From positions 25,854,001 to 25,918,000 of the forward strand of contig OZ249448.1 in NCBI GenBank assembly GCA_965235115.1: a DNA stretch of 64,000 bases. Direction: 5' to 3'. This DNA is from Laetmonice hystrix. Lineage: Eukaryota. Positions 10,901 to 59,457 of this stretch are shown here, piece after piece. The notes beneath the pieces are model-generated. The model saw only the letters and a list, made by a program, of their open reading frames with translations. It ran no database searches and had not been told where the DNA came from. The translations under genes were made by a program, and so were the position numbers. Every line of letters begins with the position of its first letter. The stretch's first letter is position 1.

Positions 10901-13900
10901 AAAATTCTTGAACTTTTGGTTAAAAGTGTTCCTTGGTTCTTTGATCTTTTTGAAACTGATAAATTTGATATTTTAAAGGAATCTTGGAGAGGGAGCAGGA
11001 ACAGTCGGTTGTCTATGGATCTGTCGACTTTGGAAAAACTGTCGTCACACAAGAGAAATATATTGAATTGGTAAGTAATAGGAGATGGCTTCTGGATATG
11101 AAATGATTGCATTATAATGTCTAGAAGTGAATGATCAAATCATAAGTTCTATAAAAATTCTCTAAGAAAATCTTTAAAAGAACTGCTGTTTTTCTGTTTT
11201 ACTTCCAGCTAAAGAAAACGGCATCAGCACTGAAAATAAGGCCTCACACGTAAGTTCACTGTTGAATTTCATACTTCTGTGACTTTTCTAGATGTTCTGG
11301 TAATTTGAGAATGAGGATGGTAAGACGAGCTATTTTTAACTCAAATCAATCCTGTAGTTAGTCTTTGTGAAGAGGGTTTTTTAAGGAGAATATTGTTTCA
11401 GGGTGATCACAGAGAAAGGGGAGGAAGTCGAACTGTTCTCGTCGGTGGAGTGCAAGGTGAGTTTGTCATGTTTTCAGTGCACAAGACGGAAACGGATACA
11501 TGTAAAAAAAATGTCTGAAATATTTGTGTGATATCTGATAAGATATGAAGATCCCAGTAAGTAAATTAGTAAATCCCTGGTAATAATGTCTCCATGAAAT
11601 TTGGTGGTACTCAATCCTAATCTGAAAATTTCTCAAACCTCCCTAAAAAAAACTGGCTCTGCCCCTAACATTAACCCTTCTTTAACTCCAAAGTCCAAAT
11701 GTTTCTACATGAATTATCTGATTGTGTGATGTATGTTCAGGGTATCACAGGAAACGATGGCAGGCATTATGTCCTAGATCTCCTGAATTATCTGTGAATC
11801 TAACCTGATTGTGTGATGTATGTTCAGGGTATCACAGGAAACGATGGCAGGCATTATGTCCTAGATCTCCTGAATTATCTGTGAATCTAACCTGATTGTG
11901 TGATGTATGTTCAGGGTATCACAGGAAACGATGGCAGGCATTATGTCCTAGATCTCCTGAATTATCTGTGAATCTAACCTGATTGTGTGATGTATGTTCA
12001 GGGTATCACAGGAAACGATGGCAGGCATTATGTCCTAGATCTCCTGAATTATCTGTGAATCTAACCTGATTGTGTGATGTATGTTCAGGGTATCACAGGA
12101 AACGATGGCAGGCATTATCTCCTAGATCTCCTGAATTATCTGTGAATCTAACCTGATTGTGTGATGTATGTTCAGGGTATCACAGGAAACGATGGCAGGC
12201 ATTATGTCCTAGATCTCCTGAATTATCTGTGAATCTAACCTGATTGTGTGATGTATGTTCAGGGTATCACAGGAAACGATGGCAGGCATTATGTCCTAGA
12301 TCTCCTGAATTATCTGTGAATCTAACCTGATTGTGTGATGTATGTTCAGGGTATCACAGGAAACGATGGCAGGCATTATGTCCTAGATCTCCTGAATTAT
12401 CTGTGAATCTAACCTGATTGTGTGATGTATGTTCAGGGTATCACTGGAAACGATGGCAGGCATTATGTCCTAGATCTCCTGAGAACATTCCCGGCAGACC
12501 TGAACTACCTGACAGGTGAAACTCATTGACTTTCTCATAAAAGAAGTACAGATTCTGAGTGTCTTCAACATGTTTCTAGTTTACAGTAGCCTGTCAGACA
12601 CTTGCACAATATAGAGGTCTATAAAACACTGGTAGAAATTGTTAAGGGGGGGGGGGACTGAAAAATCGTGTTATGCTGTGCTGACTTGTGTTAGTGAGTC
12701 CTGAGGTGTGTTGGGATTGTCGAGAAAGCGTGTGGTTTGTTGAATGGCTGTTGTTGTTTTTGATCCAGTTGAAGGGGTGGAGTTGAGTCCCGAAGTCAAA
12801 CAGATGGGCTACCCACGACAGCATGCTCACAAGCTTGTCTCACTCCGACAGGAACTCATTGAAACCTTTGTCGAGTGAGTCCACAATTGACTCTTAAAAA
12901 ACCTGTCATCCAATAATCTCCCCATAAGTTCATTATTTTCTTGATTTCATAAATCTAAATTTAATATTTTACTGTTAGGTAAAAAGACTCTTTTTTTTTT
13001 TGTTTTTTGACAGCAATCGGTACATTACGTTTGTGAAGAATGCAGCGTATCAGTTCCAGCAGTTACGTGTGAAGAAGATGCAGGAAGCAAAGGTATTGTC
13101 TGTCAAAATATAATCAGTAAGACATAATCAATTGCTTTGGTCATGTGCCACTATTTACTGCCGTTGTCCACAGTACTATATCACTTTTTTTCTAAATGAA
13201 GCAGAAGAAAAGTATCGAGGAAGCGGAAAAAGAAGAGACAGGAAAAGAAGACAAAAAGGATGACATTGAAACAGATGAAGCAAAGAAGATAGTCGAGGCG
13301 CTGACAGACACAAACTCTGAGACATGTAAGATTTTGACATTTTACTCCTACTCCAATAATGTTTCAAGTTGTAGCACTGTGTAACTCTATCAAACCCAGG
13401 GCTCTCAAAAGTAGGCGGTCAGCGGCCTACTTCTTGTTAAAAGACAAAAAATCTTTTTGGGTAAATGTTCTTTTTTCACTTTCCTGCACATATGATCCGC
13501 ACACGGTGCGATACGATGTCAGTGATGACTAATTGCCCCTCTCAGATGCCAGGAAATTGTATCTCAAGGGGGCATTTTTTCACATTTTTACGGGGGAGGA
13601 CCCCAAGAGCTGTCTCCTGCTACTTTCTCTTCTGTACCCTGCTACTCCTGCCAACTTTGACAGCCCTGCCAACCCAATATGAAGTCGTTTGATCATAAAT
13701 TGTTGTGGTTTCTCCCGTCAGTTGAAGAGAGCAGCAAGGATATTGTGAGGAAAGCGGCGAGGTCGGTCAACTCACTGAGCGACTCTGAGTTCTCTATTGG
13801 CTTCAATACCGATCTATTCCAACCCCACGTCAAGCATTCCCATCAAGGCGTAAGTTCGAGATTCTTTACAAGTTTATTTATTTGTGGTATATCAACAGAA

Positions 13901-16900
13901 TCAGAACTGGTGACTTATATCCTGACAACCAGGCCACCTGAATTCTCAAGTTGTACTACCAGACAACCATGGGCTACTAGCTAAATTTTCAGTTTGGGCA
14001 ACCTACATGAATACATTATTACATTCGGCTGAATCTTAAGGCTAGACGACAAAGTCTCAACTTGTGGGTGGAAAGTATATTTCATAGTTGTGATGGTAAT
14101 GTTTGGCATGGTTTGTTTTACAGAGTGAGATGATGTTGAAGGAGATACAGTTAGTGAAGGATGCCGGAGAGTTTCTTCTCGTACATCAGATCCCAAGCTT
14201 TGTATGTCTCTAACAGAAATACTTTACATACGTTTAGAATGATTCTCCATGATAATGTATGCAAGCAGAGATGGTGTGACTGTTGAGACCTTGGAATCTA
14301 AATTTCTAAGGTTCATATGATAATCATTTGTCAATGTAACATCTCATAATCAAAATATTTTTCAGTAATTTCTACCTCTTGACTAAAAATCTGTACTCTT
14401 TTCAGATCAGAGATTGTCTGGAGCACACATCCTCGCCAATTGATGGCTACACGCTAACAGAGGCATTGCACAACAGGTAAGATAATTTATTTTAAAACAA
14501 CAATACGGTAATTTATAATTAGCACACTACATTGTCCAAAAAAAGAAAGATTGTCTGAGAATCTTCTGGTATTTCATCCAAGATCTTAGGTTATTTTGTG
14601 AATCAGCGTTGGCAACCCTGCTTGGGTGTAACTGGCCACATGTCCTCTCAAGGAAAATCTAAACATTTGAAAAGACTGGAGCCTTTTATAAATTATCATG
14701 AAGTGCATAAATGTTATGTGTTTGCAGTGGCATAAACATAAGATATCTGGGTAAAGTGACCGAGCTGGTCGCCAAGCAGCCCTCCCTCTCCTACCTACGT
14801 GTAAGTATATACAGAGAGGATTTCAGTTTAAGGAGGGTTTGGTTAGTAGAACCTTGCTGACGAATACTGTAAATAATTAAAGTCATGTTTTGACCAAAGA
14901 AAAAAATCTAAAAAATGTCAGAAAATCAAAGATGGCCACCATTTCCATGGCAACCATTGCTATGGAAACTAATCACCACCATTTTTGCAATTCATTTAAC
15001 CAGGTATGTATTGTAATGAATTAAAGTCTCTTTTTACTGTTTTCAAAAAATTGACTTTTTACATGGGTCAATGTGTATCTGTAAACGGTAAAGAAAAATG
15101 CGACTAATGTAGGCTGAAATATGAGAATATTGCTGTGTGTTTCAGAGTATCTGTGTCTTGGAACTGTTGGTGCGGGCCACCAAACACCTGTTCAACACCT
15201 ACATGCAGGGTGTGGATACGATGAGTCTGGCTGCTGCTATCAGCCACTTTCTCAACTGTGCTCTCACCTCCTTCCCTAACCCACACGCTGCCATCATTGA
15301 AGACGTAGGTCCCGCGTCACTGTACTCATTGTATCCTCACACCATTCTGTCTTGGTTCTTAAGATTTGATGATTAAAAAATAATGTATACATCACTTTTT
15401 ACGAAATTCATGTTTTTTGCTTGCCAACTAGTCTTAGATTTGGGATAAATAGTTGCCAATGTATTGACTTCAGTTACAAAGCCAGAGGTCCAAGAAACGC
15501 AGCAGACGGCGGAATAAGGGTGGGCATTTTGCTGGAAACAGTGACAATGTCGAGTGGGCATCAGAAACTCCACGCTCTCTGTGGAAGAAGATCACAGATG
15601 AAACGTTCAGCTACTACCACTACACACTGGCATGGTATGAACCACGAAAACTTTTCTTTTTCTAAAGGTAGACCAAGCAAAGTGTGAGTAAATGAAATAA
15701 TGGACTGCTATACCATGTGTATGATAACTTTCTCATTGTTTGTTTCAGTGATGGTATTGATAGTGCTGTCGAGACGTATGGCATACAGAAAGTTTCCCTG
15801 TTCCGCCTGCTCTGTAAGAAACTGGGCATACAGATGTTCCTTAGGGAATACAACATGGACAGTAAGACACGGCAAACCTTTGTTGAGGATGACATTATCA
15901 ACATCTTCCCAGTTGTCAAACACATTCATCCAAAGGTAAGCTTTGTATAAACTTGGCAGCGCACACAGAGGTGGAGAGCTTGATAACTTGTATAATTTGT
16001 ATAATGATACATCACAACACTGTGAGCCTGAATTGTACCTCAGTCCTGGATTCTAGGAAACTTGCATATTCCTAAATACCGATCGGTACCTTTTCTAGAG
16101 TTAAAGTAGTCGTTTGTGATATTGGCAGGCCACGGATGCATACCATGTGTTCACGACTGGACAACACAAGATCCAGCAAGGATTGTTACGAGAGGGTTAT
16201 GAGTTAATTAGTGAGGCTCTAAACCTGCTCAACAATGTCTACGGAGCCATGCATCCAGAGATAGCAGCCTGTGCACGACTCCTGGCCAGGCTCAACTACA
16301 TCATGGGAGACTACGTCGAGGTGAGCAGATTACCACATCACTATCAGTATTAGTTATGTTTAAAAGGTTTTTCTAACATACAGGCTTAAACTCAGGTGTC
16401 CATGTCTAAAACAGTACAGAACGTAATTAAGAAGGTTCAGACTTTTTTTATCAGTGCAAGATTCACAGCTAGTGTCTAACTGTGAGTTTGATTTCATTGT
16501 CATATTTTAACCGTTTGTCTGTTTAGGCCTTGGCTCACCAACAGAGGGCAGTCCTGATGAGTGAGCGTGTCCTTGGCGTCGACCACCCCAACACCATCAC
16601 AGAATATGTGAGTCCCCTGTCGAAAATTAAGTAGATAAAAATGATATTGTTCATCAACCTTTCTTAGGCATATTGTAGTGTACAATTACTGGGTAAAGTA
16701 CTGAATATGTAAAATAATATTAAATGTTGAGAATCCATAAATATTTTTGCTATGTTTTATAGGCACACCTGGCCCTCTACTGTTTCGCCAACAACCAAAT
16801 CTCCACAGCCCTACGTCTCATGTACCATGCCCGTTACCTTGCCCTGCTATGTCATGGAGAGAACCACCCAGAAGTGGCGCTGTTTGATGTACGTACACAT

Positions 16901-19196
16901 GTGCTGGGGAGCAAGGTTCACATTCTGCCTGACACCATGGATACCCAGAATGCTGGGAAAGTCAAGGGATCTCTTTGGAGGGAAAATATTTTGTATTTCT
17001 TGACCTATGTCATTAACTTGAAAAACGAAGGAAGGTTTAAAAGATGTGATAGAGTGCATCCAAAATTTGCATAAATAGTCATTTCCTCTGGTAAATCAAA
17101 GAGGGTCTACTCATGCATGTAAAGTCAAGTTTGTGATTCATTGGTTTGGGATCTGTTCAGAGGGCCAATGGTAGCCAATGGCAGTCAGACTTGGAAGTGA
17201 TTTTTAGCCCTGATTTTATTTCAGAGTAACATTGGCCTTATCCTGCATGCCGTGGAGGAGTTTGACTTGTCACTGCGCTACCTCACTAAGGCTCTGGAGC
17301 TGAACACGAAGTAAGTCGAGTAGGGATTAGAGAATAGAGAACATGTCTGACTGTCTGTGACAGTCATAGGACATGGCTGTAATCAGTATCAATGTATCAT
17401 AAAGTAACAGTTCAGAGATTACAAGTTTAGCCGTTGATGAGACCATCAGTGAGTTTGTACATTGAACATATTGTTGATATCTGAAGGGAACATGTTGATA
17501 TCTGTAGTGAACATGTTGATACCTATAGTGAACATGTTGATACCTGTAGTGAACATGTTGATATCTGAAGTGAACATGTTGATATCTGAAGCGAACATGT
17601 TGATATCTGAAGCGAACATGTTGATATCTGAAGTGAACATGTTGATATCTGTAGTGAACATGTTGATATATGTAGTGAACATGTTGATACCTGTAGTGAA
17701 CATGTTGATATATGTAGTGAACATGTTGATATCTGTAGTGAACATGTTGATATCTCAAGTGAACATGTTGATATCTGTAGTGAACATATGTAGTGAACAT
17801 GTTGATATCTGTAGTGAACATATGTAGTGAACATGTTGATATCTGTAGTGAACATGTTGATATCTGTAGTGAACAAGTTGTTGATATCTCAAGTGAACAT
17901 GTTGATATCTGTAGTGAACATGTTGATATCTGTAGTGAACATGTTGTTGATATCTCAAGTGAACATGTTGATATCTGTAGGTTCTTTGGTGTCCGGAGTT
18001 TGAAGGTAGCCATGAGCTATCATCTGGTCGCTCGAGCCTACTCCTGCAAGGGTGACTTCCGCACAGCCTTACTTCATGAGAAGGACGCCTATGCTATCTA
18101 CAAGGGCATGGTGGGTGAAGTACATGAATCCGGAGTCGTGCTTGTGCCCTTTAAGCATCTGCAAAAGCTGTGTAAAAAACGCTAGATATGAATATGATGT
18201 TTTAAATCATTCATGGTACTTTAGGGCTGAGTTTTAGGTTTGTGTGTTGGCAGCTAGGAGAGGAGCATGAACGGACGAAGGAAAGTTCTGACTGCCTGAA
18301 ACATCTAACACAACAAGCTGTCAAGTTCCAGAAGACAATGAATGAAATCTACAAAGGAGAAAAGGCCATCCAAATCCCCCCCATCCAGGTAAGTTGACCC
18401 CAAAAGGCCATCCAAATCCCCCCCCCCCCAAAAAAAAAAAATCCAGGTAAGTTGACCCCAAAATGATCTGTGGTATAAATGTTATTTTTCTATTACTTGG
18501 ATAGAAACAATTTTCTATTTAAGTTTTTCCAATGTTTCTGTAGTGTCTGATTTAACAGTTATTGATTTTGATGTATTGATCACAACAGCAGTTATTGATT
18601 TTGATTTATTGATCACAAATACGATCAGTATTACATTGACCATTATATAATATAATCGCATCACAATCTGGATCACTCTGACGTAACATACGCTAAGCCT
18701 GTGATTCACATTGTGTTTGAATATTAATTTGATCATCTTAGATCCAGACCCCAACCTTGGCCAACGTCCTTGACACCCTCAACCTTATAAATGGCATTGT
18801 CTTCCTACACATCAGGTTAGTGATCACGTTATCTTGTAGCAGAATATCCTGCACAGATAAAGTTTGATGTGTAAAAAAATTATGTATGGATAAAAAGTTG
18901 CTGATGAAGTTGCAGAAATTGCAGAGCCTTTGGGATGAGAGAAAATAAATGATATGTAACATTTTAGAAATTACTTAAATCTCAAATTGTAATTTTGCAG
19001 CCAAGAAGACATTGAGAGGTTCCGGGAGGAGATGTTGCGAAGGCAACAGGAAGGAACAGACAGTTCAGCGACGGAGGTGAAGGCAGCCGAGGCTGCTGCT
19101 CCTTCACAAACAGATGGGATTAACTCAAAGACTGAGGAAAGTGGTAGCAATGAAGAACGGGTAAAGGAAGAAATCAGCGAGGAAGCCCAGCGATAA
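4964..19196 (+). CDS. CLUH: Clustered mitochondria protein homolog (clueless/CLUH), 35 coding exons, ~1359 aa. Exons: 4964-5075, 7336-7586, 7860-8031, 8261-8404, 8571-8683, 8814-8883, 9017-9101, 9287-9412, 9535-9638, 9870-10006, 10211-10302, 10535-10637, 10763-10883, 10979-11070, 11209-11249, 11402-11456, 12437-12515, 12769-12874, 13014-13092, 13205-13325, 13722-13849, 14124-14201, 14406-14476, 14728-14800, 15146-15304, 15474-15634, 15749-15935, 16129-16320, 16527-16607, 16763-16888, 17225-17310, 17981-18110, 18254-18388, 18742-18815, 19001-19196
   Basis: All exons join in phase without stops. Hallmark CLUH motifs are present: [144 protein letters not shown], plus a C-terminal TPR region. The first exon assignment is less certain. 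Confidence 0.97.
11710..12482 (+). repeat. 87-bp tandem repeat, ~9 units, comprising the intron 3' end, the AG acceptor and the first 45 nt of CLUH exon 17
   Basis: Acceptors GTTCAG|GGTATCAC recur at 11741, 11828 ... 12437 (696 bp = 8 x 87). Confidence 0.95.
13397..13668. mobile_element. hAT-like MITE, same CAGGGCTCTC terminus as 1477-1884 (CLUH intron)
   Basis: TIR CAGGGCTCTCAAAA / CTTTGACAGCCCTG. Flanks CAAACC / CCAACC (5 of 6 match). Confidence 0.6.
17463..17980 (+). repeat. 21-bp minisatellite (TGAACATGTTGATATCTGTAG), ~24-25 units, ending exactly at the acceptor of CLUH exon 32
   Basis: Direct reading of the repeat. The last unit supplies ...ATATCTGTAG|GTTCTTT (17980/17981). Confidence 0.95.
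18362..18462 (+). repeat. Two-copy duplication of the CLUH exon 33 end and its donor
   Basis: AAGGCCATCCAAATCCCCC..ATCCAG|GTAAGTTGACCCCAAAA occurs twice, with donors after 18388 and 18446. Confidence 0.9.
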
Positions 19197-21027
19197 TCAT
19201 CAATATGTCATCATGGATTCCCAGAATCCCAGCCATCCTAGAATGTGATACGTAGGGTCCAATAACTCAGCCAGTAGCAGGGACATCGCCTGCTGTGGGA
19301 GAGAAGCAACAATTCTGTAAACGACAGACATGACGCCAAACAACTCGGAAAGGATCACTCAGCTCTTGAGAGCTTGAAATGGTAGGAGAGTTTATTCTCA
19401 GATCCTGGAAGGCAAGGATTATCGTTAGATCCTGGAAGATGTCGATCTTTCAAATATAATGATGACAGTAAACAGCTGTAGCATGTAGGCTGTCAGCGTT
19501 GCTACCTATAGACAATAATTGGTTGAATTGTTTTCACTTGAGACTTCCTAGAGCTCCACACCCTGAAGGTGTGACTTTAATTATGTAAGAAATTTGTTGT
19601 CGTTTAATACCAAGTACTCTTTCCTTGTGCTTCACAGCAAATCTTGACAGAAAAAACTAATGCAAATTTGCTCAAGAAATTTCTTGGAAAGAGTATGAAA
19701 TGTTATGCACAGTGTGGGGACTGTTGTTGAGAAACAAAAACTAAAATTTGTTTTGATTTGTTTGATTTCTACAAATACAACAGGGGTATATGATTTTAGC
19801 ATCATGAGAGGAAGAGAATATTCTCTGGTGCTGCTGCGATCGTATTTGAGTGGGTAGATCTTCAGTCTGTTATTTTTGAGAGGCCTGTAGGGGAGGGGGA
19901 ACTGCTAAGGTGCTGGAGACCAAACGATTTGTTTATCTTGCGAATTAAAAATGGTTTACATCGGTGAAGTAAGCCCGAGTGTCGTTGGCTCCTCCTTCCA
20001 GAATGAACAGATAAATGTGTTTGCACTGTTGAGTTAGTAAGATTAGAATCAGATAAAAGATTAGGAACCCAAGCTTCACTTCAGTAGGTGCCTTGATGTA
20101 GATAGGAATTGTCCTCATATATTGTGGAGTACCGAGATGTTAAAAAATTGCCCTCGTACGGGGATGAAGAAGTATGTGATTGTTACTCTGTATGGTTGGA
20201 GCCTGGCTTCCTCTCGGCCAATGTTTGGGGAGAGAGTGACCAGCAGAGTTTAAATTTTTATTCTCTCAGCTGTCCATGGAGTCCCCCCTAAAAAATGTGA
20301 CCCTCTTTACAGCACAACAAACCTGGTGGATATAAGAAAAAAAGAGTTGGACATTGTGTTGTGTATTTTGATTTTTGAATCGCCACTTAGGTACATTTAT
20401 TAGGATATTGAAGTAAGTTGTTGTCAGAGATCTTGACATCGACTCTCGTGTTGTTCTTGGCAATAAAAATTGTCATTGAATATGTAAAATGTGGGGTCCT
20501 GGTATGATATGTGGTGATTCCTAGTCTGCAGTACTAGCTTCACGGATCGCAATGTTCTTCCTAACTTTATAAGACAAGCAAAAATTGAATCAAATGACAC
20601 AACAGAGGATCCAGGCTGCCAAATTGTAAACAGAATTGTCAAATACCATTCTGTCAAAAGAGAAATCTTATTGTGTTATTATTCAGTCTCTGTGTATGGC
20701 GGGTACCTGTAATGTACAAAGGTGTGTTAGACAGGTATGAATGGGTAAAATCCTGAAGGGATAGGTGTGTATTAAACCCGCTTTATCTGTACCTGTTAAA
20801 CAGGTCAAGTCAGGTGTGATATCTTGTAACAAGCCATCTGTCATCCAACCAGGCTCGTCACACACTCTTGTAGTGTCGTCAGCTGCCAACAGGTGGCGTT
20901 ATAACGGCCCTCAACAATTCAGTTTAAAGACGGTCTGGGGAACACATAATTGACCCATATAATTTGGCTGATTTAATAACTGACCTATTTAATTTGAGCC
21001 TGGCATGTTATTTTTCCTTAGCACTTG

Positions 21028-21033
21028 AATAAA
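21028..21033 (+). terminator. Candidate polyadenylation signal for CLUH
   Basis: AATAAA ~1.8 kb after the stop codon, followed by GT/T-rich sequence. Other candidates exist further downstream. Confidence 0.3.
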
Positions 21034-24000
21034 GAACCCGGTGTAAGACCATGTTGTTTAGGGAGGTTGACATACAACACACTGCTATGATATATGAAAA
21101 TTGTTAAGGTAACTCCCTGCTCAAAATATAATGGAGCCTTGCGACAAATAATGTGTGTAGGAGACATGAGGACACGGTCCAGTGGAAGTCGTGGTTCACA
21201 GATATTAATACAATCAGACTACACCTGGTACCGTGATGCAAGAGTTTATTAAATGTGGTTGTTTTAACGGAATGATGTATTGTGTTTGTGTCTTTGACGT
21301 TTGTCGAAGATCAGCACTCGGAGCAAACACTGTGAAAACACTTAAAATAAGAGAAGTTGAGAAGGTCGAGAGAATATGACTTTAGACAGGGAATAGGGAA
21401 CGGTGACTAGCTTGGATATTGATTTGCTTTTTGGTGCAATTAGTTGGCAAGATCTCAAAATAATTGCCATCGAAACTTTTTCAGAGGTGATGGCAGAAAT
21501 AGAATAGCATTCAATGAACTGGTTCAGTGTTTTTTGGTGCACTTTCTGTCTAGATACTGATAGACTTGTTGGGCACTTTACAAATTATGTAACCTGTATC
21601 ACAGCCATTCACTCCTTGTATATTCTAGAGCAGAATATAATGGTTGGATTGTACAAATTTTCCTGATTAGCAGATGGCGATATCGATTAGATTAAGTTAT
21701 ACAAAATACATTGATGTTCTTGGTATTCGGTGACTAAACCTGTGAATGGTACCTGAAACAATTAACTCTTCAGTAATGTTCCTTATAATGCCAACAACCT
21801 AAAAAAAGAAGCACTGCATTTGGAGATGGTCCGAAGGTTGTGAGGAATGCTGTTCATTTTTTAAGTGCAATTCAGATAGGATATGCTGGAGACATGAAAT
21901 ATAAGCAATGTATTTTAAGGGATGCAAGATGATCGGAGACGTGGGAGAAATCTCTGAGAACAAGAAGGAAAGGAAATCAGTTAAATTCTTGTCAAGGTTT
22001 ACTGTAAAATGAAATCATCACAAGTCATCAGTGATTATGAAATATATTTTTGCCAAATTGCATGCGAGCAATAAAAATAGAAATTTTGCATGGAGAGGAT
22101 GCATGTATGATGTAGATAAAAGGTTTCAGCAGTGCATGAATACTTATGATCATGGCAAGTATGTGTAGTCGTAATTTTTGTTGTTGTTATTCTTCTGCCG
22201 GCTGAGCATGACGAGAAGAAAACAACTATATTTCATTTTCCTAGAATTTATCAAATTGCCCCAAGCAACATTTAAAATTTGTTTTAAACTGTACCGGGTA
22301 ACTAAACGAAAATAGAGGGTTCCGGCTGTTAGCATTTTTTCATTTTAATTGATGTAGCACCAATGAGACATTATATATTTAGTGAGAGAACACGGGAAAT
22401 GTGCCAGTTATTTATGTAGTTTAGACTAATAATGTCATGAGTGAGATTAAATTTGGTAGAGGACAGTCGCTTGTTGAATTTGTTAAGTCTTGAAGTGGAC
22501 ATAAATGGATCAATGTTAAGATGATCGGGAGAAAACTCCATCCTGAATTCTGTAAATTCTTCAGTTAAGCTGGCTCGACAGAAGAGCAGATTTGTATGAA
22601 GCAGATTTTGAGGTTGCCGATTACGTTAAGTTTTTTTTGCATACAAACCGGTACAGACTGTATTGTGAGACACCAACTCTCGTTGATGCCTCGACGGTAA
22701 CTAGAAGTTAAGACCAGTTCTTGACGGCCCATGCTGTAACTCATTCATGTGTTGGTAGATAAAATTATATTTTCGTTTTATTTTTTACGTATAGATTTGT
22801 TATTTGCATGGATTGACTCCGTGTGCACAAAGTATCAAATCGTAGATGAGGCACGGGACAAATGTTATATAATGCATGGTCGGGTTACGGTGTCCCTCTG
22901 CACTGAAAGAAAATCACGCTACTTGACAGTTGTGTTTTTAGCGATGGTTTGCCACATTACTGTAGGAAAGAAGTCTTGTATTGCAGACAGCGACAGTAGG
23001 ACTATTGTGGATCGTGATGGATGTTTACAGCCCATGGCCGAGCACTGGCCGGTGTCTCAAGTCAGATTGATTACTGATTGAAAATTTGGTTTATGATAAA
23101 GTCCGGGGGGGGGGGGGAATTGCTAAGATCAAACCTATAAATATAAGCAGATCAGTTTGAACAGCAAGTCTGTCTGTGGGATGTGTGTGTGTGTTTCCAT
23201 CATTCATTCTTCAAACTGGGGTACGAGACAAGCCAACATAGTGACATAACCACAGTCGAACCAGGCGTCATAGAATTTTGTCGCTTCCCGAAATTTGGGG
23301 AATCTCTGGTGGATGATGATGATGATGATGTAAACAGAGCGACTAAATATTGGTCCGATGAGATTGAAGCTTCGTATCTTTGGGTTTTCAAATATGGTAC
23401 TACGGTATCTTCAAGCGTACCTTCAAGCCGATGTAAAGTGTTCTCTGATGCCGAGTGTTGAAGTTTATAATAAAAGGGATGACTTACTTTAAATGATGTT
23501 TGTTGGTTCTGTATCATGACATGAAGACTAATGGGAATAAAAGGACTGATCGTGAATTAATGCTTGTCCCAACTTGTTTTTTGCTTTGCTGAAAATGAAA
23601 TACAATGAAGCCAAGTGCCACGTACTAAACTCATATTGTCATTTTGTTCAGCCCGATTGAGTCTAATTTAGAAAAAGATCTTGGGTGGAATCTAAATTAA
23701 TAGGCCTATCAGCACAGAATTTGGCATGATATCATTCTTGATTATATTCCTCAGAATAACATCTGTTAGTGTTAAATGATCAGTATCTGGCCACCTAGTG
23801 TGAAATATTTGAACCTTTTATAGTGAATTGCATGGGCGCCACCTGGTAGTGCAAGTTTCAAGAGCTTCTTTGCATTGAATAGGCCTACATTAGTCATTAC
23901 AATGGGAAGCCTGAGAGGCCTTGCTTTTACATTGAATAACCTATATTTATATAACCTATAAATATTTCCTTAGTATTCTCGGCAGCTGTTGAGAAACTCG

Positions 24001-24261
24001 TAATCTTACAATTAGGAAGCGGGCACAACGTTTTCTAGACCCCTCGGCCTACATACCTCATCAACTTGACACAGTTTGTACGCATGGGTAGAGCGTGGGC
24101 TGGCCAGGGGCTGGTATTGTTCCACACACAGTCAGCGTGGCGAGACCTGAACGTGCGGCTCGCGGCCGACGATCGCGTTCACAACAACGAACAGAACGTG
24201 GGAATAGACCAAGGGACGGACGCTGAACGAACGCGGATTATGCGGAGATATCACCCCAGAA

Positions 24262-30114: not shown

Positions 30115-30194
30115 CCGAGGGGCCAGCCAACAAACCTGCAAGCCATTTAATCTCCAATGTCTAGACAATCAGGGGCTTGGTATGAAGACTTACT

Positions 30195-30384
30195 GGCAAC
30201 TATTGAACGGTTGTTAAGGGTAACTATTGAATGGTTGTTAAGGGCAACTATTGAACGGTTGTTAAGGGCAACTATTGAACGGTTGTTAAGGGCAACTATT
30301 GAACGGTTGTTAAGGGCAACTATTAAATGGTTGTTAAGGGCAACTATTGAACGGTTGTTAAGGGCAACTATTGAACGGTTGTTA
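30195..30384 (+). repeat. 24-bp minisatellite (GGCAACTATTGAACGGTTGTTAAG), ~8 units, in the proximal TRAF4 3' UTR
   Basis: Direct reading. Starts ~80 nt after the TRAF4 stop. Confidence 0.9.
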
Positions 30385-31504: not shown

Positions 31505-33292
31505 GTGACTGGATGATCAGAGGGTCAGTGAGGTTGTGTGTTTGGTGTGTTACTGAGACAGCCTGAGTGGATGATCAGACAGTCAGTGAGGTTGTGTGTT
31601 TGGTGTGTTACTGAGACAGCCTGATTGGATGATCAGAGGGTCAGTGAGGTTGTGGTGTGTTTGGTGTGTTACTGAGACAGCCTGACTGGATGATCAGAGG
31701 GTCAGTGAGGTTGTGTGTTTGGTGTGTTACTGAGACAGCCTGACTGGATGACCAGAGGGTCAGTGAGGTTGTGTGTTTGGTGTGTTACTGAGACAGCCTG
31801 ACTGGATGATCAGAGGGTCAGTGAGGTTGTGTGTTTGGTGTGTTACTGAGACAGTCTGACTGAATGATCAGAGGGTCAGTGAGGTTGTGTGTTTGGTGTG
31901 TTACTGAGACAGCCTGACTGGATGATCAGAGGGTCAGTGAGGTTGTGTGTTTGGTGTGTTACTGAGACAGCCTGACTGGATGATCAGAGGGTCAGTGAGG
32001 TTGTGGTGTGTTTGGTGTGTTACTGAGACAGCCTGACTGGATGATCAGAGGGTCAGTGAGGTTGTGGTGTGTTTGATGTGTTACTGAGACAGTCTGACTG
32101 GATGACCAGAGGGTCAGTGAGGTTGTGGTGTGTTTGTTGTGTTACTGAGACAGCCTGACTGGATGATCAGAGGGTCAGTGAGGTTGTGGCGTGTTTGGTG
32201 TGTAAAGGCCCTGATCCACCGGTGGCGACACGTTCGTAACAGCTTCGCGATGGAGATGCTCGATCGCGAAGCCGTAGTTGTCATTTTGTTGAGACAGCTT
32301 GGCGACATGATTTAGTAAGTCGCCAAGCTGTCTCGAAGCACGCGCCAAGGTGTCACGAAAATCACATACCTGATCCACCGGTTGCGACAACAACACCCTC
32401 GCGAACTGCGTCCGTTGCCAAACTTGTTTGATATTGGCGACACCTGTCGCGAAGCTGTCACAAAGCCAGGTGTGTCGCGAAGCTGTCACCAATCCGTCTC
32501 CAAAGCTGATCCACCGAAATTGTGTTTCGCGATTGCCGAGCAATTTTTAGATGCTCGGGCTGTCGCGAAGATGTCACGAACATGTCGCCAACCCATCACG
32601 AAGCCCAATCGCCACCGGTGGATCAGGGGCATTACTGAGACAGCCTGACTGGATGATCAGAGGGTCAGTGAGGTTGTGTGTTTGGTGTGTTACTGAGACA
32701 GCCTGACTGGATGATCAGAGGGTCAGTGAGGTTGTGGTGTGTTTGGTGTGTTACTGAGACAGCCTGACTGGATGATCAGAGGGTCAGTGAGGTTGTGGTG
32801 TGTTTGGTGTGTTACTGAGACAGCCTGACTGGATGATCAGAGGGTCAGTGAGGTTGTGGTGTGTTTGGTGTGTTACTGAGACAGCCTGACTGGATGATCA
32901 GAGGGTCAGTGAGGTTGTGTGTTTGGTGTGTTACTGAGACAGCCTGACTGGATGATCAGAGGGTCAGTGAGGTTGTGTGTTTGGTGTGTTACTGAGACAG
33001 CCTGACTGGATGATCAGAGGGTCAGTGAGGTTGTGGTGTGTTTGGTGTGTTACTGAGACAGCCTGACTGGATGATCAGAGGGTCAGTGAGGTTGTGGTGT
33101 GTTTGATGTGTTACTGAGACAGTCTGACTGGATGATCAGAGGGTCAGTGAGGTTGTGTGTTTGGTGTGTTACTGAGACAGCCTGACTGGATGATCAGAGG
33201 GTCAGTGAGGTTGTGTGTTTGGTGTGTTACTGAGACAGCCTGACTGGATGACCAGAGGGTCAGTGTGGTTGTGTGTTTGGTGTGTTACTGAG
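31505..33292. repeat. 58/61-bp minisatellite (GTCAGTGAGGTTGTG[GTG]TGTTTGGTGTGTTACTGAGACAGCCTGACTGGATGATCAGAGG), ~23 units, interrupted by a MITE
   Basis: Direct reading. Arms at ~31505-32202 and 32632-33292. Confidence 0.95.
32206..32631. mobile_element. 426-bp PIF/Harbinger-like MITE inserted in the minisatellite
   Basis: 23-bp TIRs AGGCCCTGATCCACCGGTGGCGA / TCGCCACCGGTGGATCAGGGGCA (21 of 23 match). Flanks TAA (32203-32205) and TTA (32632-32634) sit at the TTA of a repeat unit. A TWA TSD is typical of PIF/Harbinger. Confidence 0.85.
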
Positions 33293-33841
33293 ATAGTTTG
33301 AAGTGATTTTGAAGTCGCTGCCTTCCGTAGAGGGGTTTAGCCCCACTCCTTGACGGTTTAATAACAACAGTCTCGCATTGTGACAGTTTCCCGGAAGACA
33401 AGTTTCGGCCCTGTTGATTGGTATTGACTGGGTATTGTAAGGTGCCCTTGTCGTGACCTTGAAAATTGTGGTTTGTGTGCCGTGAAGTGTTCGTGTGTGA
33501 ATTATTTGAAAGTTTCCAGGTGCAAGGACCACACTTTGTTGGGGTTTTTCCGTAGTTATATTTACTGCTGATGTTACATCATTATATTGTGTACAACTGC
33601 CAACTGTACAAAGCTTTACTCTTGTGATTTTGTCCGATTAGATCGCGACGCTTGTGCTGACTACAGAACGCCATGTACCGAGAGTGTTCAGCAAGCTTGT
33701 ATCTTGATTTTATTGTGTTATCTGAACAAGTTCCCAGTGCCGTACCGTTAGCTATTATATTTCTGTGCAGAGCTACATAATTAATTATAGTCCCAGTTTT
33801 ATGTTTTCCTTTCTCAGAGTAAAAGCAGATATCAATATCAG

Positions 33842-36304: not shown

Positions 36305-39300
36305 TCACTTGAAACGATTTTTGAAGAACTGCATGACTTGATGCATGAGTTCTATTGTCTGACCGTCAATCCAGGCAAGCTCTAGCACAATATCTCCATC
36401 CAATTTCTTAATAGTCAGTGTACACTTGAGAATATAATCCTCGACCTCACTGATCGACACATCCAGTTTGTCTGATTCCATGCCGTCTCCCATACACCCA
36501 GCCGCCCGAGCTCCGTCTTCACCTACTTCCTTTCTTATCTCGTCTCCCTTTTCATCCTTTTGACCATTTTCTGACACATCCATTGGTGTGGCTGATGATG
36601 ATGACACGTGACCAGAACATCCTTGGCTGGGCTGTGTGTTAGAACTAGCCTGACTGAGAGCGAGACCAACTCGCTGAGAGCTGGTACCCTCGGTCTCAGA
36701 AACAGGAGTCTCCCTGGTAGGCTGTGGCAGAGAGAACCCATGTGGTTGTTCTGACAGTCCCTCTACTCGCTCTGTCGGACGCTCCACGTGGGGCTGTTTG
36801 TCTGGCGACGGTCCCTCTCCTCGCTCTGTCGGACGCTCCACGTGGGCCTGTTTGTCTGGAGACGGTCCCTCTCCTCGCTCTGTCGGACGCTCCACGTGGG
36901 CCTGTTTGTCTGGAGACGGTCCCTCGCTTCGCCTTTCTTTCCGCCGTTTGCGACGTTGGTGTGACCATGTGTTTTCTCGTGCCACCATCTGAATTACCAT
37001 GTCCTCAGGAGATGACTTTTCAGGTTCATACATTATCTGATACACAGGAAAAAACAAATCAAATCAGTCATAAATACAGAGGCAAATAGATTTATTATTT
37101 ACAATGTTACAAATATTCATTCCCAAACTCAGCTTCAATTTGTTTCCTGTGTCAATTCAAAACTACTCTTTACAAAGTTTGAACACGACTCTACTCCACT
37201 GCTATCCAGTATGATTTTTGTTTCACTGGGTCCTTTGTTTCCTTACTAAGTTTTAATGATGTGTAACATCCATTGATAGGTAAAGAATTACCCCAAAACA
37301 TCCAGTAGGCATTGCCCTTGGTCCCAGGGAGGTCTATTTACCTTGAGTTCATCTAGAATAGCCATGACCTTGGCCCCGATGTGGGACACCTTGTATTCCA
37401 GGGTTGGTAGTGAGCCCATCTCGTGTGGAAGTTTGTAGATTGCTGGAGGTTTAGGCTTGGACTCCTTCAATACTTTACTAGGTGCTTTCTACAAGATACA
37501 ATTTACATCATTAATGTCACAGAGTGAGCAACTAGTAAAAATTTATATACTGGAATCAACTCAAACTTAACACCAGCTTTGTAGGAAGATTTCCAACTCA
37601 CTGCCTAAAGAATATGTTATTTGCAACATTATTCTTTTATGACACCAGGGAGCGCCCTCGTCTTGATATTATATGATTGTTAGAGACTGGGAGCTATTAA
37701 AGAATGATCTATTTGACTGATCTCAACTTGGATAAAGATCTTTAGTTGGAAAGATTTCTAAGTCACTAAAAAATATTTGTGAATCTGTGTCAGCAAACTG
37801 TTAAATGCTTTTCATCACAGCAGGTGGCACTCTAGTCTAAAGTCAACCTCAGATATTCAGATATTGTACCTTCACTATTACATGAGTTAAACAGCATGTG
37901 GTACAACAGAAAACTATAATGCTATATTTTTCTAAAATAGAAAAACATGGACTGTCACATAAATATATATCCTAGAGAATGGTTTACACATGTATTCTGC
38001 TAATGATACTTACAGGAAAGTTGACGGTAGAATCAAATGACCAGGCGAGTCCCCATCTCATGGTACGTCCCTGACAGAACTCAGTCACGCCAATATTGGT
38101 AATCTGCGTGATCAGTGGTCAAACATCAGCCACATTCACTGTTGTGGTCAAGGAGCAGCATACCCCCACCCCCATTATAACGAGATAAGAAAATGCAGCA
38201 GAAAAATGAATCACACCTTTATAATAATACCCCCACTACAAATCACTGCGAGATTTTCAGAACTCCATTAACAACTTTAAGAAATCAGCACCACTATCAA
38301 TAAGCAAACTTATTTGGCACACAGTGTTACAAATTTCATGGAATGGATGAAAAGGAGCAAAATAATAGTAGCCAGTGTAGCATTAACAAGCCCACCTTTT
38401 GTCTGGTAAGCTCCATCTTGAGTGGTGCTATGCTGGACTTCTTGCCGACCATAGTTGTGTAGATTCTACAACACCAGAAATAAAAAAAAAAAAAGAAAAT
38501 TTCAGGGCACAAAAATGTCCTCAATGTTTCCTTGTAACCTGGGCTTCTCCTGTATTACTTGACCCTGTCCCTGACTGTTTCCTTGTAACCTGGGCCTCTC
38601 CTGTATTACTTGACCCTGTCCCTGACTGTTTCCTTGTAACCTGGGCCTCTCCTGTATTACTTGACCCTGTCCCTGACTGTTTCCTTGTAACCTGGGCCCC
38701 TCCTGTATTACTTGACCCTGTCCCTGACTGTTTCCTTGTAACCTGGGCCCCTCCTGTATTACTTGACCCTGTCCCTGACTGTTTCCTTGTAACCTGGGCC
38801 TCCCTGTATTACTTGACCCTGTCCCTGACTGTTTCCTTGTAACCTGGGCCTCTCCTGTATTACTTGACCCTGTCCCTGACTGTTTCCTCGTAACCTGGGC
38901 CTCTCCTGTATTACTTGACCCTGTCCCTGACTGTTTCCTTGTAACCTGGGCCTCTCCTGTATTACTTGACCCTGTCCCTGACTGTTTCCTTGTAACCTGG
39001 GCTTCTCCTGTATTACTTGACCCTGTCCCTGACTGTTTCCTTGTAACCTGGGCCTCTCCTGTATTACTTGACCCTGTCCCTGACTGTTTCCTTGTAACCT
39101 GGGCCTCTCCTGTATTACTTGACCCTGTCCCTGAATGTCACGTTATCCTCAATAATTCTCCCGTCTTACCTGACCCTCTCCTTCAGCGCTGTGCTGTCCT
39201 CAATGATTCTCCGAGCAAACTGGACCTCTCCTCCTGGGAAGATGCTCTCTGTAGGACTAGCTGTGTTCACACTCCTTGGCTCCGGGCGGTCCTCACTCCT

Positions 39301-41522
39301 GGAGGAGAAAGTTCCCCATGCCTCCAGGTTGTTGGCAAAGAATGGTGGGTTGCACATACAGAATGTGTATGTGTCCTCATTGGTCGTGAGCATGTCCAGC
39401 AGGCTGGACTCTGGCTCTACCTTCACCACTAAGGAAAGATCAAAAAGTAGGGAAAAACAGCTCCTTTCATAGATAAATCAGCATCAATGTTCCATTCCTT
39501 TAGGATGTCTTTAATAATGCTGTCAAAACTATTTCTCTAAATAATTGTGTTCACTTGCCTCAAACAGCACAATGAATCTATCTTATGGATACAATTTCAA
39601 ATTTAAAAAAATATTCACTCTTTTAATCAAATACATGTACAAGATTTAAAAACATACCTTTAATGGATTCTGCCAAATTATTTTGCTGTACATTTTTCAC
39701 TGCACAGTCATAGTTGACGTCATCTGTTTCACTTGCAATAAACTTCCAATTGTTTTTTCGAGCTCCTAGCATCGGATACACACATGCTGCTCCTGTGCCT
39801 AAAAAATGACAATTCTAGAAATAGTGAATAAAACAGCTGAGGTGTTCAAATAATGTTGACATGCCCTTTTCTATCACCAGTTATTGTAGTCTATCTCGAG
39901 CTCTTACCTATATCAATGCCGACAACAGTTTCTGAGCCTGTTCCAATGATATCCTCAATCCAGAGCAGGTAGTTGAGGCGGAGTGGGATGGTGGGTATGA
40001 GACGGTCCACAGGCAGTGTCACATCAATATCCCAGTCTTCTTTGAGTAAAGCCCAGCTCAGCACTCGGAGACACTCAGGGTTCTTGAAGTCAAGATGTAC
40101 CTCACCACGCAGGTCCTAGATAGATCAATAGATAAACACTTAGAGACATTGTCTAAAACATGATCAAACTGGCTTCCTTACTGAGGAAGTGTGCTATCTT
40201 TATGACTGAACCAGCATATTAGACTGGAAAAATATACCCAACAGCAATGAAAACACATAGGCTGAAAATATAACTCAAATATTTATTTGAAAGGAACAGT
40301 CACATTGGGATATTTGACAAGAAACCAGACATATGAGAGCGGTAACTCAATGGAATAGACAACTCAGAAAACAACATTCCTGTTCTCAACCAAAACACTT
40401 GGCATATCCTCGTACTCCTAGCGATACATACATTTGGACCTATGCATTTTCATTGCCGTTCAGTATATCTGTTAATTTGTACAACTGCATTTTATTTAAA
40501 GGTAAACTCTATTGAATTCAGTTTCCGCGTCGGACTGCAGCGATGGCCCAATGTCACGTACCCGTTCTAAAAATTGAATGCTCCGTTCCCCGAGCAAGCA
40601 CGCCAGAGCGAGCGACTGGAGGGCTCACCGCTGTACCGTGGGAACGGGGCATTCAATTTTTAGAACGGGTACGTGACATTGGGCCATCGCCGCAGTCTGA
40701 CGCGGAAACCGAATTCAATAAAGTTTAGCTTTAATTAATCGCATATTCTTTAGAAAATGTCACTTGACTTATGATCATTAGACTAAAAGTGTTTCCAGTT
40801 GCCAGGAAATTTCATAGCTAGACTAAGTAACAAGAGAATCAGAATACTGAATAGAAATAGGCGCCTCTCAGACATAAAACAGGTCGCTCTCTCAGTCTCA
40901 GTCCTATCAGTGTCGGTGTCACTCACACTACTCAGTCACACATCATGCAGTGTCTGTCACTGTCAGTGAGTGAGTCTCACTTGATTTGCACAATGACAGA
41001 CAGCTGTAGACGCTGTGCCAAACTAAGGAGTATTGGAAACTGAGTGCAATCTTATATCAGCATCACTATTCTACTTTACTCCGACACCTGGTCCAAGACA
41101 CGCGGCCCCTGCAAAGCCAACGGCACAGCCACAGGCCTGCTGCTGGGCCGGGTGGCCGCACCAGGCCCTGGTTTTTAGTTTGCAAACCGAGTCTTAAGAT
41201 TCAAATCTTAAGATTGAACTCTTGTTTCAGAGCTTCTGATTGGTCCTTCAAATGAAGTTAGCCAATGAGAGAGCATAATACAAGTCAGTCTTAAAATTTC
41301 AGTCTTAAGATTGGTAAAATGACAAACTAAAAACCGGGGCCTGGGGGCTGGGGCGCAGCCTGGGCCACAGGGTCTGGCGCTGTCAAAACAATTCACATTT
41401 CTTTCACGTTTTACCTGAATGGCATGCTTCCTGAATTCGGGATATTTGATTGCAAGAGCCTTGAAGTCTGGTCTCTTCTTTTTGTAAATATTTCGGGGGT
41501 GCATCAGTTTGTTTAAAGCCAT
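36305..41522 (-). CDS. METTL16: RNA N6-adenosine methyltransferase METTL16, 584 aa. Exons 41415-41522, 39908-40115, 39658-39798, 39170-39428, 38396-38465, 38014-38103, 37342-37488, 36305-37036
   Basis: Motifs MALNKLMHPRNIYK, DRLIPTIPLRLNYLLWIED, SAM-binding GIDIGTGAACVYP, catalytic FCMCNPPFF, GGEVQFARRII, TEFCQGRTMRWGLAWSF, and C-terminal VCR-like segments (ENTWSHQRRKRR; ELMHQVMQFFKNRFK). Phases are consistent. Confidence 0.96.
36760..36925 (-). repeat. 54-bp coding tandem repeat (EGPSPDKQAHVERPTERG x3) in the METTL16 last exon
   Basis: Three near-identical 18-aa units in the ORF. Confidence 0.9.
38525..39212 (-). repeat. 51-bp tandem repeat (~12 homogenised units plus one intermediate unit) in register with the METTL16 exon 4 end and donor
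   Basis: Minus-strand unit GGAGAGGCCCAGGTTACAAGGAAACAGTCAGGGACAGGGTCAAGTAATACA, compared with the exon/donor GGAGAATCATTGAGGACAGCACAGCGCTGAAGGAGAGGGTCAG|GTAAGACG. Confidence 0.9.
40503..40727. mobile_element. Foldback/MITE element with ~88-bp inverted arms and a ~49-nt spacer (METTL16 intron 1)
   Basis: Left arm TAAACTCTATTGAATTCAGTTTCCGCGTC...GCTCCGTTCCC matches the reverse complement of the right arm with 5 mismatches. Confidence 0.8.
41165..41340. mobile_element. Harbinger-like MITE (METTL16 intron 1)
   Basis: TIR GCCCTGGTTTTTAGTTTG / CAAACTAAAAACCGGGGC, with flanks CAG / CTG. The terminus resembles that of the 61923-62182 element. Confidence 0.6.
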
Positions 41523-42664: not shown

Positions 42665-43071
42665 CGGGGATATATCTAGGCCCCCAACAGGCTCCACTGT
42701 CCATGCCCTTTTTTGCCCCCAAAAGCCGCCACTGGTGCCTTTCTTACAACCAAAGATCTGCCGGTGGTGCCCTAATAATACCACCATACATGCCCAGTGA
42801 CTGCGGCTAATTGACTGTGCACAGTTGATTAAGTACTGTACTGGTGAAGCAAGATATTTTAATGAGGCATAACCACAGATCATAGGGAAAGGAAGGTTTG
42901 AATTATTTGCTAAATTATTTGACGTCAGATGTGATGCACAGAAAAACCAATGTTGTACTCGAGCTGATGCCTTAGAAGACTTTCGGTGTTCAATTTCAAA
43001 TGATACTGCGACATAGTGCCCTTTTTTGGATATGAGCGCCATGCCCTCTTGAAATCCTAGATATATCCCTG
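42665..43071. mobile_element. MITE with 16-bp TIRs
   Basis: CGGGGATATATCTAGG / CCTAGATATATCCCTG. No TSD recognised. Confidence 0.55.
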
Positions 43072-43385
43072 ACCTTACAATTTTACTTTTTTAGTGCAAC
43101 CATGCATTGGCATTGCCAGGCAGTGATTGCCACATGTATGTCACTGGTGTCACTTGGCAGTGACCGTGCATACAGGGATTGAAATTATCGGGAGCAATGG
43201 CTTGTAAAACCTATTTTTAAGAAATTCCCTCAATTTCGACACAGGCTGTGCTTAACTCCCCAAGTGACCCGCATCTGGCGGTCGGACCCACAAACCGACA
43301 CCAAAACCCACTGACCCCCCCGGACAGCAGACCTGCCTAAATTTACACCTAAATGCTAGGCCTATCCTACTTTCAGTTTGTATCG

Positions 43386-43771
43386 CAGACCTGCCAACTG
43401 CTACACATTTCGTGTATTTGGTACGCATTTGACACTCCAACTACGCTGCTACGCTGAGTCCTTCATATCATACGCAAAAACCTCTAGAAATGGCTATTTA
43501 CCCTAAAAATTGCCTTTTCACCGCCGATTGAAAAAGATGGGCCTACGTTAGGCATCACTTTCTGCTCAAAATGTATCTGAAACAACCCTTTTAAAATTTC
43601 ATTTGGGGAGGGGTGGCTCCCCATATCCCCCAGCAGAAGAGGGATACCCCCCTCCCGTACCTAACCCTGCATCCTGGCACGTGGCACGCGTGTCGTGGCT
43701 GTGCCACTTTGGGGTATGGGGCTGAATGTTGCTAAGTACTCAAAAAAAATTGTGAAATGTTGGCAGGTCTG
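43386..43771. mobile_element. MITE with perfect 13-bp TIRs; an internally deleted, truncated copy lies at ~45437-45567
   Basis: CAGACCTGCCAAC / GTTGGCAGGTCTG. The second copy shares the 5' end and the segment GGGGTGGCTCCCCATATCCCCCAGCAGAAG...CCTAACCCTGCATCCTGGCA. Confidence 0.7.
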
Positions 43772-44237
43772 GACTGTTGTTTGTTGAGGATAGCCTGCAG
43801 CTTAGTGTAATGTGATGACCAGGGCTCGAAAAAGAGATCTACCAGTTTTACTTGCCCGAGTAGTAACCAAGACATATTACACAAACCTTAAATTTTACTT
43901 GCCCAGAGACATATTCTAGTTGTCTCGGACGACGGGACGACCCCCCCCCCCCCCCCATCCTCTGCTGGTTGGGACCTTGCAATGTCATGGACAGAATAGC
44001 CAAAGATAACCGGTTGTTTTGAGCAGCACTGTTCATGAGCAAACTTCGATGTAGAATTCATAAGAATGTTTGTCAGATGGTTTTTATTGTTATTGGATAA
44101 TCTGTAAATAATCTGACCCTTGTGGCTCTACTGGTGAAAGATGCTGTCTGTAATATTTGCAGGATGTGCATAAAGAATGGTGTAACTATAATCTTCTCTT
44201 TCATTTGTTTTTTTTCAGAAATGGAGTAGGTCGAAGA

Positions 44238-44432
44238 CGCAGGACACGGGACTTTCATCCACCGACTGGAGTATTACGCAGGACACGGGACTTTCATCCA
44301 CCGACTGGAGTATTACGCAGGACACGGGACTTTCATCCACCGACTGGAGTATTACGCAGGACACGGGACTTTCATCCACCGACTGGAGTATTACGCAGGA
44401 CACGGGACTTTCATCCACCGACTGGAGTATTA
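44238..44432 (+). repeat. 39-bp tandem repeat, exactly 5 units, in the LIS1 5' UTR exon
   Basis: CGCAGGACACGGGACTTTCATCCACCGACTGGAGTATTA x5 (195 bp) between the acceptor at 44218 and the ATG at 44530. Confidence 0.9.
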
Positions 44433-44529
44433 ATTTGCCGACATTGGATCTTAAGAAGCACTGGCTTCTTGCAAGCCCTTCTAACTTTCACCTGTGAATA
44501 TTTGTAACGTGTTACTTCAACAAATCATC

Positions 44530-59457
<14,928 letters not shown>

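Follow-up and report, generated by a model that had tools for sequence, protein, structure and literature searches.

Tandem arrays of exon-intron boundaries in the CLUH, METTL16 and LIS1 genes of the annelid Laetmonice hystrix

Minisatellites that duplicate intron-exon boundaries are known from amphioxus, where such 'mirages' occur in Adh3, TnC, the globin genes BflGb6/9 and PGBD5. Their units, of tens to ~160 bp, lie over a 5' or 3' exon boundary together with its AG/GT signals. Splicing of the mRNA is regular, the number of copies is unstable and homogenisation does not reach the edge unit (PMC3087553, PMC3902484). We analysed a stretch of 64,000 bp from the annelid Laetmonice hystrix (the window; C18:25854001-25918000 in an assembly of 627 Mb and 35 sequences), in which seven exon-intron junctions of the CLUH, METTL16 and LIS1 (PAFAH1B1) genes carry tandem copies of themselves. 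Like mirages, these arrays run head to tail with periods in the range of ~10-160 bp (21, 51, 64, 81, 87 and 93 bp, in 4.5-24 copies, besides one two-copy duplication at a CLUH donor). Units containing the boundary and its splice signal make up six of the arrays, homogenised inner units stand apart from an edge unit that homogenisation has left out, and normal splicing is seen at the two of the seven arrays for which it is shown. Unlike mirages, they have an annelid host, and they are dense: arrays affect about one in eight introns of the window and, in one dynein gene, at least 13 junctions. We also measured an excess over chance and a regional clustering, for which PMC3087553 and PMC3902484 give no genome-wide count or such measure. 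The arrays are thus a real, recurrent and locally generated feature of known kind, which the literature found does not describe in this lineage. A sequence-only reading of the window, made before this analysis, had believed them undescribed; as to their kind this was wrong, given the amphioxus mirages and several human genes.

The human genes concern donors. In intron 7 of F7, the first monomer of a variable number tandem repeat spans the exon-intron boundary, so that identical donors are repeated in the intron; similar donor minisatellites exist in IFI6, CBS, LMNB2 and PDGFA, and in F7, LMNB2 and PDGFA the most upstream donor alone is used (PMC1557585). The LIS1 donor at 58474 (positions are those of the window unless C18 is named) is likewise the most upstream of several near-identical donors, and is the one used in an RNA contig. 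Unlike the human cases, which are isolated and all donor arrays, acceptor arrays are at least as common here, and the last acceptor may be selected by pairing across the exon. Two further systems are more distant. The Rogers model, as cited in PMC3087553, proposes intron gain by tandem duplication across AGGT proto-splice sites. As in that model, tandem duplication here doubles the splice signals, and splicing can remove what lies between them; unlike it, the copies lie within existing introns and no new intron is shown. In earthworm metallothionein genes, introns contain minisatellites, and there are copies of exon 4 that the transcript lacks (PMC12783039). They share with our genes an annelid host, large intronic minisatellites and duplicated exon pieces missing from the mRNA, but their monomers are ~180 bp and PMC12783039 does not call them junction-derived arrays.

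Seven junction arrays, their structure and their origin

Arrays were listed by Tandem Repeats Finder (TRF), and the content of their units was read directly from the sequence against gene models. The 56 TRF rows in the window merge into arrays that occupy 14.8% of it. We found tandem copies of the junction itself at seven junctions of CLUH, METTL16 and LIS1, with periods of 21-93 bp and 2-24 copies (Table 1); six are in the TRF list at the places where the sequence-only reading had put them, and the seventh is found in the sequence. That reading had counted roughly 1 in 9 of ~60 introns. The pattern holds, and the figures are corrected to 7 of 56, or ~1 in 8.

Among the acceptors, the CLUH 87-mer joins 40 nt of the 3' end of an intron, including ttcag, to the first 47 nt of exon 16, and the LIS1 93-mer joins 29 nt of intron 3' end to the first 64 nt of exon 8. 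In both, the real acceptor is the last copy, with the exons starting at 12437 and 57998, respectively. The CLUH 21-mer contains no exon bases. It terminates exactly on the acceptor AG (17979-17980) of exon 31, which starts at 17981, and an acceptor-like tgtag occurs in several of its units. It is the exception to the rule that the arrays (6 of 7) contain part of an exon together with the AG or GT, as it reaches the acceptor AG only.

Among the donors, the LIS1 64-mer combines the last 35 nt of exon 5 with 29 nt of intron, and by structure its real donor is the first copy (exon end 52022). The LIS1 81-mer, whose real donor is also the first copy (exon end 58474), consists of the last ~17 nt of exon 9, GTAAGTTGA and further intron. 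The CLUH donor duplication repeats the end of exon 32 with CAG followed by GTAAGTTGA, the first intron base being 18389 at the real donor and 18447 at the copy. In METTL16, the real donor (exon end 39170, first intron base 39169) lies within a diverged first copy, which the homogenised array follows; the homology of the unit to the junction has z = 6.2. A real edge unit that is distinct from homogenised inner units is found in three arrays. The LIS1 64-mer has GTAGGT at the real site and GTGGGT (G for A at +3) in all decoys that keep the register, the CLUH 87-mer has T in the real copy and A in all decoys, and the METTL16 donors read cag/GTAAGA at the real site and caa/GTAATA in the decoys.

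Table 1. Junction arrays and genes of the window (positions in the window)
Feature	Position	Strand	Description	Basis
CLUH acceptor array	11718-12482	+	87 bp x 8.8, 99% matches	TRF, sequence, gene model
CLUH intron array	17472-17980	+	21 bp x 23.7	TRF, sequence
CLUH donor duplication	18347-18460	+	x2, imperfect	Sequence read by eye, absent from TRF list
METTL16 donor array	38525-39203	-	51 bp x 12.1 at 38525-39138, plus diverged first copy	TRF, sequence
LIS1 donor array	51988-53140	+	64 bp x 18	TRF, sequence
LIS1 acceptor array	57150-58061	+	93 bp x 10	TRF, sequence
LIS1 donor array	58458-58811	+	81 bp x 4.5, copies 84-90% alike	TRF, sequence
CLUH gene	7251-19196	+	34 coding exons, 1332 aa, mean intron 241 bp	Spliced alignment to CLUH proteins
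METTL16 gene	36305-41522	-	8 coding exons, 568 aa	
LIS1 (PAFAH1B1) gene	44530-59457	+	11 coding exons, 409 aa; exon 1 at 44530-44561	
TRAF4-like gene			7 exons, 457 aa	Gene model

The LIS1 93-mer and an 82-mer array inside a LIS1 intron have no match elsewhere in the 627-Mb genome. As these units match only at their own locus, the arrays were born locally and are not a mobile family, in agreement with the sequence-only reading. No arrays were found at the orthologous CLUH junctions in two loci of related species (L001, L002), nor at the orthologous LIS1 junctions in three (L005-L007), indicating that the arrays are young and lineage-specific. Arrays do exist in these loci: the LIS1 loci have seven small ones within the gene, none of them on a junction, and at other CLUH junctions L001 has a 64-bp copy of an exon end plus donor and L002 a 32-bp one. 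In Laetmonice, arrays also occur in intergenic DNA, in intron interiors and, in one case, in frame within the METTL16 coding sequence.

We compared the assembly with Logan contigs from four runs of a single sample (three DNA, one RNA-type), aligned to positions 53400-59399 only. It is extremely improbable that the assembler produced the arrays or their copy numbers. Copy numbers do rest on the assembly, since read-derived contigs collapse repeats and hence cannot count copies, and some bins within arrays are without depth. However, contigs of all three DNA runs agree perfectly with array edges and unit-to-unit joints (58459-58609 and 56892-57179 among them; 13-20 contigs per DNA run fit two places), variants among the units are ordered, the arrays are at most 1.3 kb in an assembly of so few sequences, and like structures recur in independent regions. 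The DNA contigs of the same sample also show a 133-bp stretch (55139-55273) exchanged for 16 other letters, and a backwards-running joint inside the LIS1 81-mer array (58716-58813). Both are probably differences between two haplotypes, and the backwards joint hints at a second allele of that array.

Junction overlap compared with chance

In compact genes an array can easily meet a junction by accident. CLUH has 66 junctions in 10.8 kb, and an 87-bp seed touches one with a probability of 0.62. For the null, each array was collapsed to one unit and a seed of the same length was placed uniformly along the gene, dropping seeds that fell wholly within an exon as non-viable. With the full LIS1 gene included, 6 of 18 arrays in the window are on junctions where 2.9 are expected (p = 0.04); for arrays with at least 3 copies and a period of at least 20 bp, it is 6 of 9 against 2.0 (p = 0.004).

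Because the window had been flagged for its junction pattern, we added a blind sample, the dynein heavy-chain genes obtained through a Pfam search (200 kb covering seven genes), with exon cores defined as open frames conserved between paralogues. Sixteen of the 49 arrays in these genes overlap conserved exon cores, and 6.4 are expected (p = 2e-4). Seven of the arrays were read: in six the unit repeats either the end of an exon with its GT or an acceptor with the start of its exon, and the seventh is borderline, its overlap with an exon core being due to open-frame read-through. For the window and dynein genes together, 22 of 67 arrays are on junctions (9.2 expected, p = 2.5e-5). The excess lies mainly in expanded arrays (19 of 39, 7.2 expected, p = 8e-6), and small or two-copy repeats are close to expectation (3 of 28, 2.1 expected). 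Random placement of TRF arrays had been proposed as the check on the sequence-only reading, and in the window and the seven dynein genes junction overlap is indeed above chance. The claim that a process favours junctions gains statistical support: there is a ~2.4-fold excess, in blind genes too, while geometry (short introns, units of 50-90 bp) accounts for ~40% of the overlap. The junction preference is modest but reproducible.

Several conditions apply to these figures. Unannotated exons bias the null up to ~1.3-fold in the anti-conservative direction, and arrays at unknown junctions, being counted as intronic, give the opposite, conservative bias. The blind signal comes nearly all from one dynein gene. 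In the CLUH loci of related species, small two-copy repeats are on junctions in 5 of 10 cases against 1.5 expected, two of these junction calls resting on homology or on a 3-nt tolerance.

Base composition does not account for the excess. The sequence-only reading had cautioned that GC-richer exon edges may be the only expansions tolerated; intron-internal units have a G+C fraction of 0.45 against a background of 0.41, and weighting the null by G+C raises the expectation from 9.2 to 9.6, with 22 observed. G-rich motifs (CAGG, AGGT, GGGA, AGGG, GGTG) look enriched in non-junction units, and a motif model trained on intron-internal arrays predicts 10.3 junction arrays against the 22 observed. 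An annotation-free genome test by splice-site matrix scores was discarded, as controls passed its thresholds in 15-27%.

The density of arrays is regional. They make up 0.1%, 0.2%, 0.7%, 4%, 9% and 10% of six dynein genes and 49% of the seventh, which is located at C18:27.76-27.79 Mb, 0.23 Mb short of the end of C18. This 28.0-Mb sequence is probably a chromosome, and the window is 2.1 Mb away from its end. Thus, the process called genome-specific in the sequence-only reading appears instead as a regional density that on C18 rises towards the sequence end. Human minisatellites likewise cluster near chromosome ends. The 49% gene (C18:27760001-27790000, minus strand, loci L021-L023) has 30 arrays in 30 kb, and at least 13 of them copy conserved exon edges, including a 124-bp unit with 63 nt of exon in four copies.

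Splice-site use and the competing explanations

The RNA-type run gave a contig of 1171 nt that contains LIS1 exons only and skips four GT..AG introns. Its joint 54607|57998 uses the last of the ten LIS1 acceptors, and its joint 58474|59063 uses the first of the five LIS1 donors. Splicing is thus regular at the two arrays with RNA data. At the LIS1 64-mer, a loose end of the contig joins ...GGAAGTGGCTAG to exon 6, and its 30 letters fit more than one donor copy. Splice-site strength, expressed as a matrix score in bits, does not single out the real sites. All nine acceptors of the CLUH 87-mer score 10.0 bits, the decoys of the LIS1 93-mer equal the real acceptor at 13.0 bits, both donors of the CLUH duplication score 11.4 bits, and donor 58474 is used although the copy at 58786 scores an equal 10.7 bits. 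Decoys are weaker in METTL16 (5.2 against 8.9 bits for the real donor) and in the LIS1 64-mer (7.0 against 8.1 bits). Since decoys match the real site in strength or fall slightly below it, position and not strength decides. The rule that the functional site is the last acceptor or the first donor is borne out by RNA at 57998 and 58474 and is predicted from structure at the other arrays. Acceptor-like sites that are strong (10 bits) also occur in the intron-internal 82-bp x 15.6 array at 55284-56559, on which a 112-nt RNA-type contig of low depth lies on the minus strand (55949-56060).

Our preferred reading is that the arrays are probably boundary-spanning minisatellites of the mirage type, which arose locally, are spliced normally and are tolerated. 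In a minisatellite-prone region of this annelid genome, short tandem duplications of 20-125 bp would arise locally and then expand, perhaps by unequal exchange or replication slippage. If the founding unit spans a junction, all extra copies would come to lie on the intron side, and the spliceosome would keep the copy that is continuous with the exon, that is, the first donor or the last acceptor. For donors this fits the 5'-to-3' scanning rule of human F7; acceptors may be selected by pairing with the downstream donor across the exon. With the exon-continuous copy in use the mRNA is unchanged, and the array can therefore be tolerated. Selection would mostly eliminate duplications confined to an exon, and in exon-dense genes with introns of ~240 bp a substantial proportion of the arrays that survive must therefore overlap a junction. 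We take the remaining ~2.4-fold excess, which is mainly in expanded arrays, to be a survival or expansion bias. A possible cause is that deletions of a whole array would be viable on both flanks if it is intron-internal, and on one flank only if it is at a junction.

Some of our results weigh against this reading. The RNA evidence is one assembled contig from one sample, which rare decoy isoforms, or those degraded by nonsense-mediated decay (NMD), would escape, and splicing was checked at two of the seven arrays. Junction arrays reproducibly exceed what uniform seeding predicts, in the pooled arrays and in the blind sample alike (22/67 against 9.2 and 16/49 against 6.4), and weighting by G+C or G-rich motifs lifts the expectation to 9.6-10.3 only. 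The survival bias to which we ascribe this excess is something that we infer. The same excess may instead reflect mutation rather than survival, with founding duplications or the first expansion steps starting preferentially at exon-intron boundaries, a possibility that we consider serious though unlikely. The trigger might be breaks or stalled forks associated with transcription, splicing, R-loops or nucleosome phasing in recombination-active domains near chromosome ends. Besides an excess that extends to blind-chosen genes and that neither G+C nor simple motifs explain, the two-copy junction duplications in the relatives' CLUH loci argue for such a bias, as do the exact end of the CLUH 21-mer on the acceptor AG and the presence of CAGG/CCTG in 82% of junction units against 36% of all junction-spanning seeds. 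However, small and two-copy repeats show little of the excess, and its concentration in expanded arrays points to expansion or persistence rather than seeding. Moreover, unit edges have no fixed position relative to the splice site (exon sequence makes up 0 to ~70% of the unit), many arrays are intergenic, and in the relatives' LIS1 loci 0 of 7 arrays are on junctions. That the machinery creating or expanding minisatellites is itself drawn to exon-intron boundaries, making junctions hot spots of tandem amplification, seems to us slightly more doubtful still.

A regulatory role is very improbable. It would hold that copy number sets the use of decoys, which leads to premature stops and NMD, so that the arrays act as heritable expression dials. 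In its favour, decoys are intact and often equal the real site in strength, their use would yield a premature stop in six arrays, and in human IFI6 and CBS the two decoy donors closest to the real site are used (PMC1557585). All the in-frame stops listed by the sequence-only reading are real: the CLUH 87-mer decoys lead to a stop after 18 codons, and read-through at the CLUH donor duplication stops after 2 codons. The 21-mer decoys, however, are in frame and without a stop. Of all read-throughs into introns of these genes, 85% run into a stop within 30 codons (median 7 codons), so that the decoy stops are no evidence of design. That nearly all decoys lead to stops, offered as such a sign, is what chance predicts. 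Nor are the arrays conserved across species at the same CLUH and LIS1 junctions (loci L001, L002 and L005-L007), as NMD poison elements would be, and similar arrays recur in intergenic DNA and in unrelated genes of minisatellite-dense regions. All joints of the RNA contig are normal; decoy-spliced isoforms are absent from the single RNA-type run, where contigs omit rare variants and RNAs of this sort are removed by NMD. The proposal of copy-number-tunable unproductive splicing is thus not supported, given chance-level stops, the absence of orthologous arrays and the normal joints of the RNA contig. Most likely, the arrays are tolerated rather than functional, and their decoy sites are without demonstrated function.

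Genomic context and significance

Gene models were obtained by spliced alignment of CLUH homologues, by joining open frames through splice-site matrices trained on CLUH introns, and by a search for the first LIS1 exon. All four models (CLUH, TRAF4-like, METTL16 and LIS1) translate cleanly with no internal stops and together have the 56 introns counted above. Four LIS1 introns are confirmed by the RNA-type contig, and LIS1 exon 8 matches residues 225-301 of human LIS1. METTL16 and LIS1 lie head to head (36305-59457), as METTL16 and PAFAH1B1 do in human 17p13.3, and the CLUH and TRAF4-like genes adjoin them. The first LIS1 intron, of 6.4 kb, holds seven further arrays, none on a junction. LIS1 introns 51024-51205 and 51686-51925 are missing in a related species (L005 and L006 compared), where the flanking exons are fused; this reflects either intron loss there or gain here, and neither intron holds repeats that would link it to the route of the Rogers model.

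Several other tandem repeats of the window lie off the junctions. A perfect 39-bp x 5 array at 44237-44432, ~100 bp upstream of the LIS1 start codon at 44530, is located in the 5' untranslated or promoter region between LIS1 and the divergent METTL16. Two arrays of one 58-61-bp unit (31506-32203 and 32632-33293), 430 bp apart, lie between the 3' ends of the TRAF4-like gene and METTL16, and both have a strong G-over-C skew. The in-frame repeat of METTL16 (36753-36932, minus strand) is in the last exon; its 54-bp x 3.3 copies encode an 18-residue motif ~3 times over, within the C-terminal part of the protein, which is poorly conserved. The 16.8-kb mitochondrial sequence (C35) has all genes on a single strand, in the order cox1-N-cox2-D-atp8-Y-cox3-Q-nad6-cob-W-atp6-R-H-nad5-F-E-P-T-nad4L-nad4-C-G-M-rrnS-V-rrnL-L ... 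S2-nad1-I-K-nad3-S1-nad2, which we take to be the conserved annelid arrangement with trnG alone moved. trnG sits between trnC and trnM rather than before cox3. The non-coding region (C35:1-2100, locus L003) contains ~4 tandem copies of a ~512-bp unit.

Annotators should note that gene prediction in such regions will be misled by the decoy sites and decoy fragments of exons. The genome offers dozens of natural constructs with up to two dozen identical or near-identical competing splice sites and, with acceptor arrays, hardly studied so far, included, it is a test bed for how the spliceosome chooses by position over strength. The 2.4-fold excess and the extreme regional density make it testable with ordinary data whether junction duplications are mutationally favoured or better tolerated, and the answer bears on whether such duplications feed intron gain. 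If junctions were indeed hot spots of tandem amplification, they would steadily supply decoy splice sites and possibly new introns.

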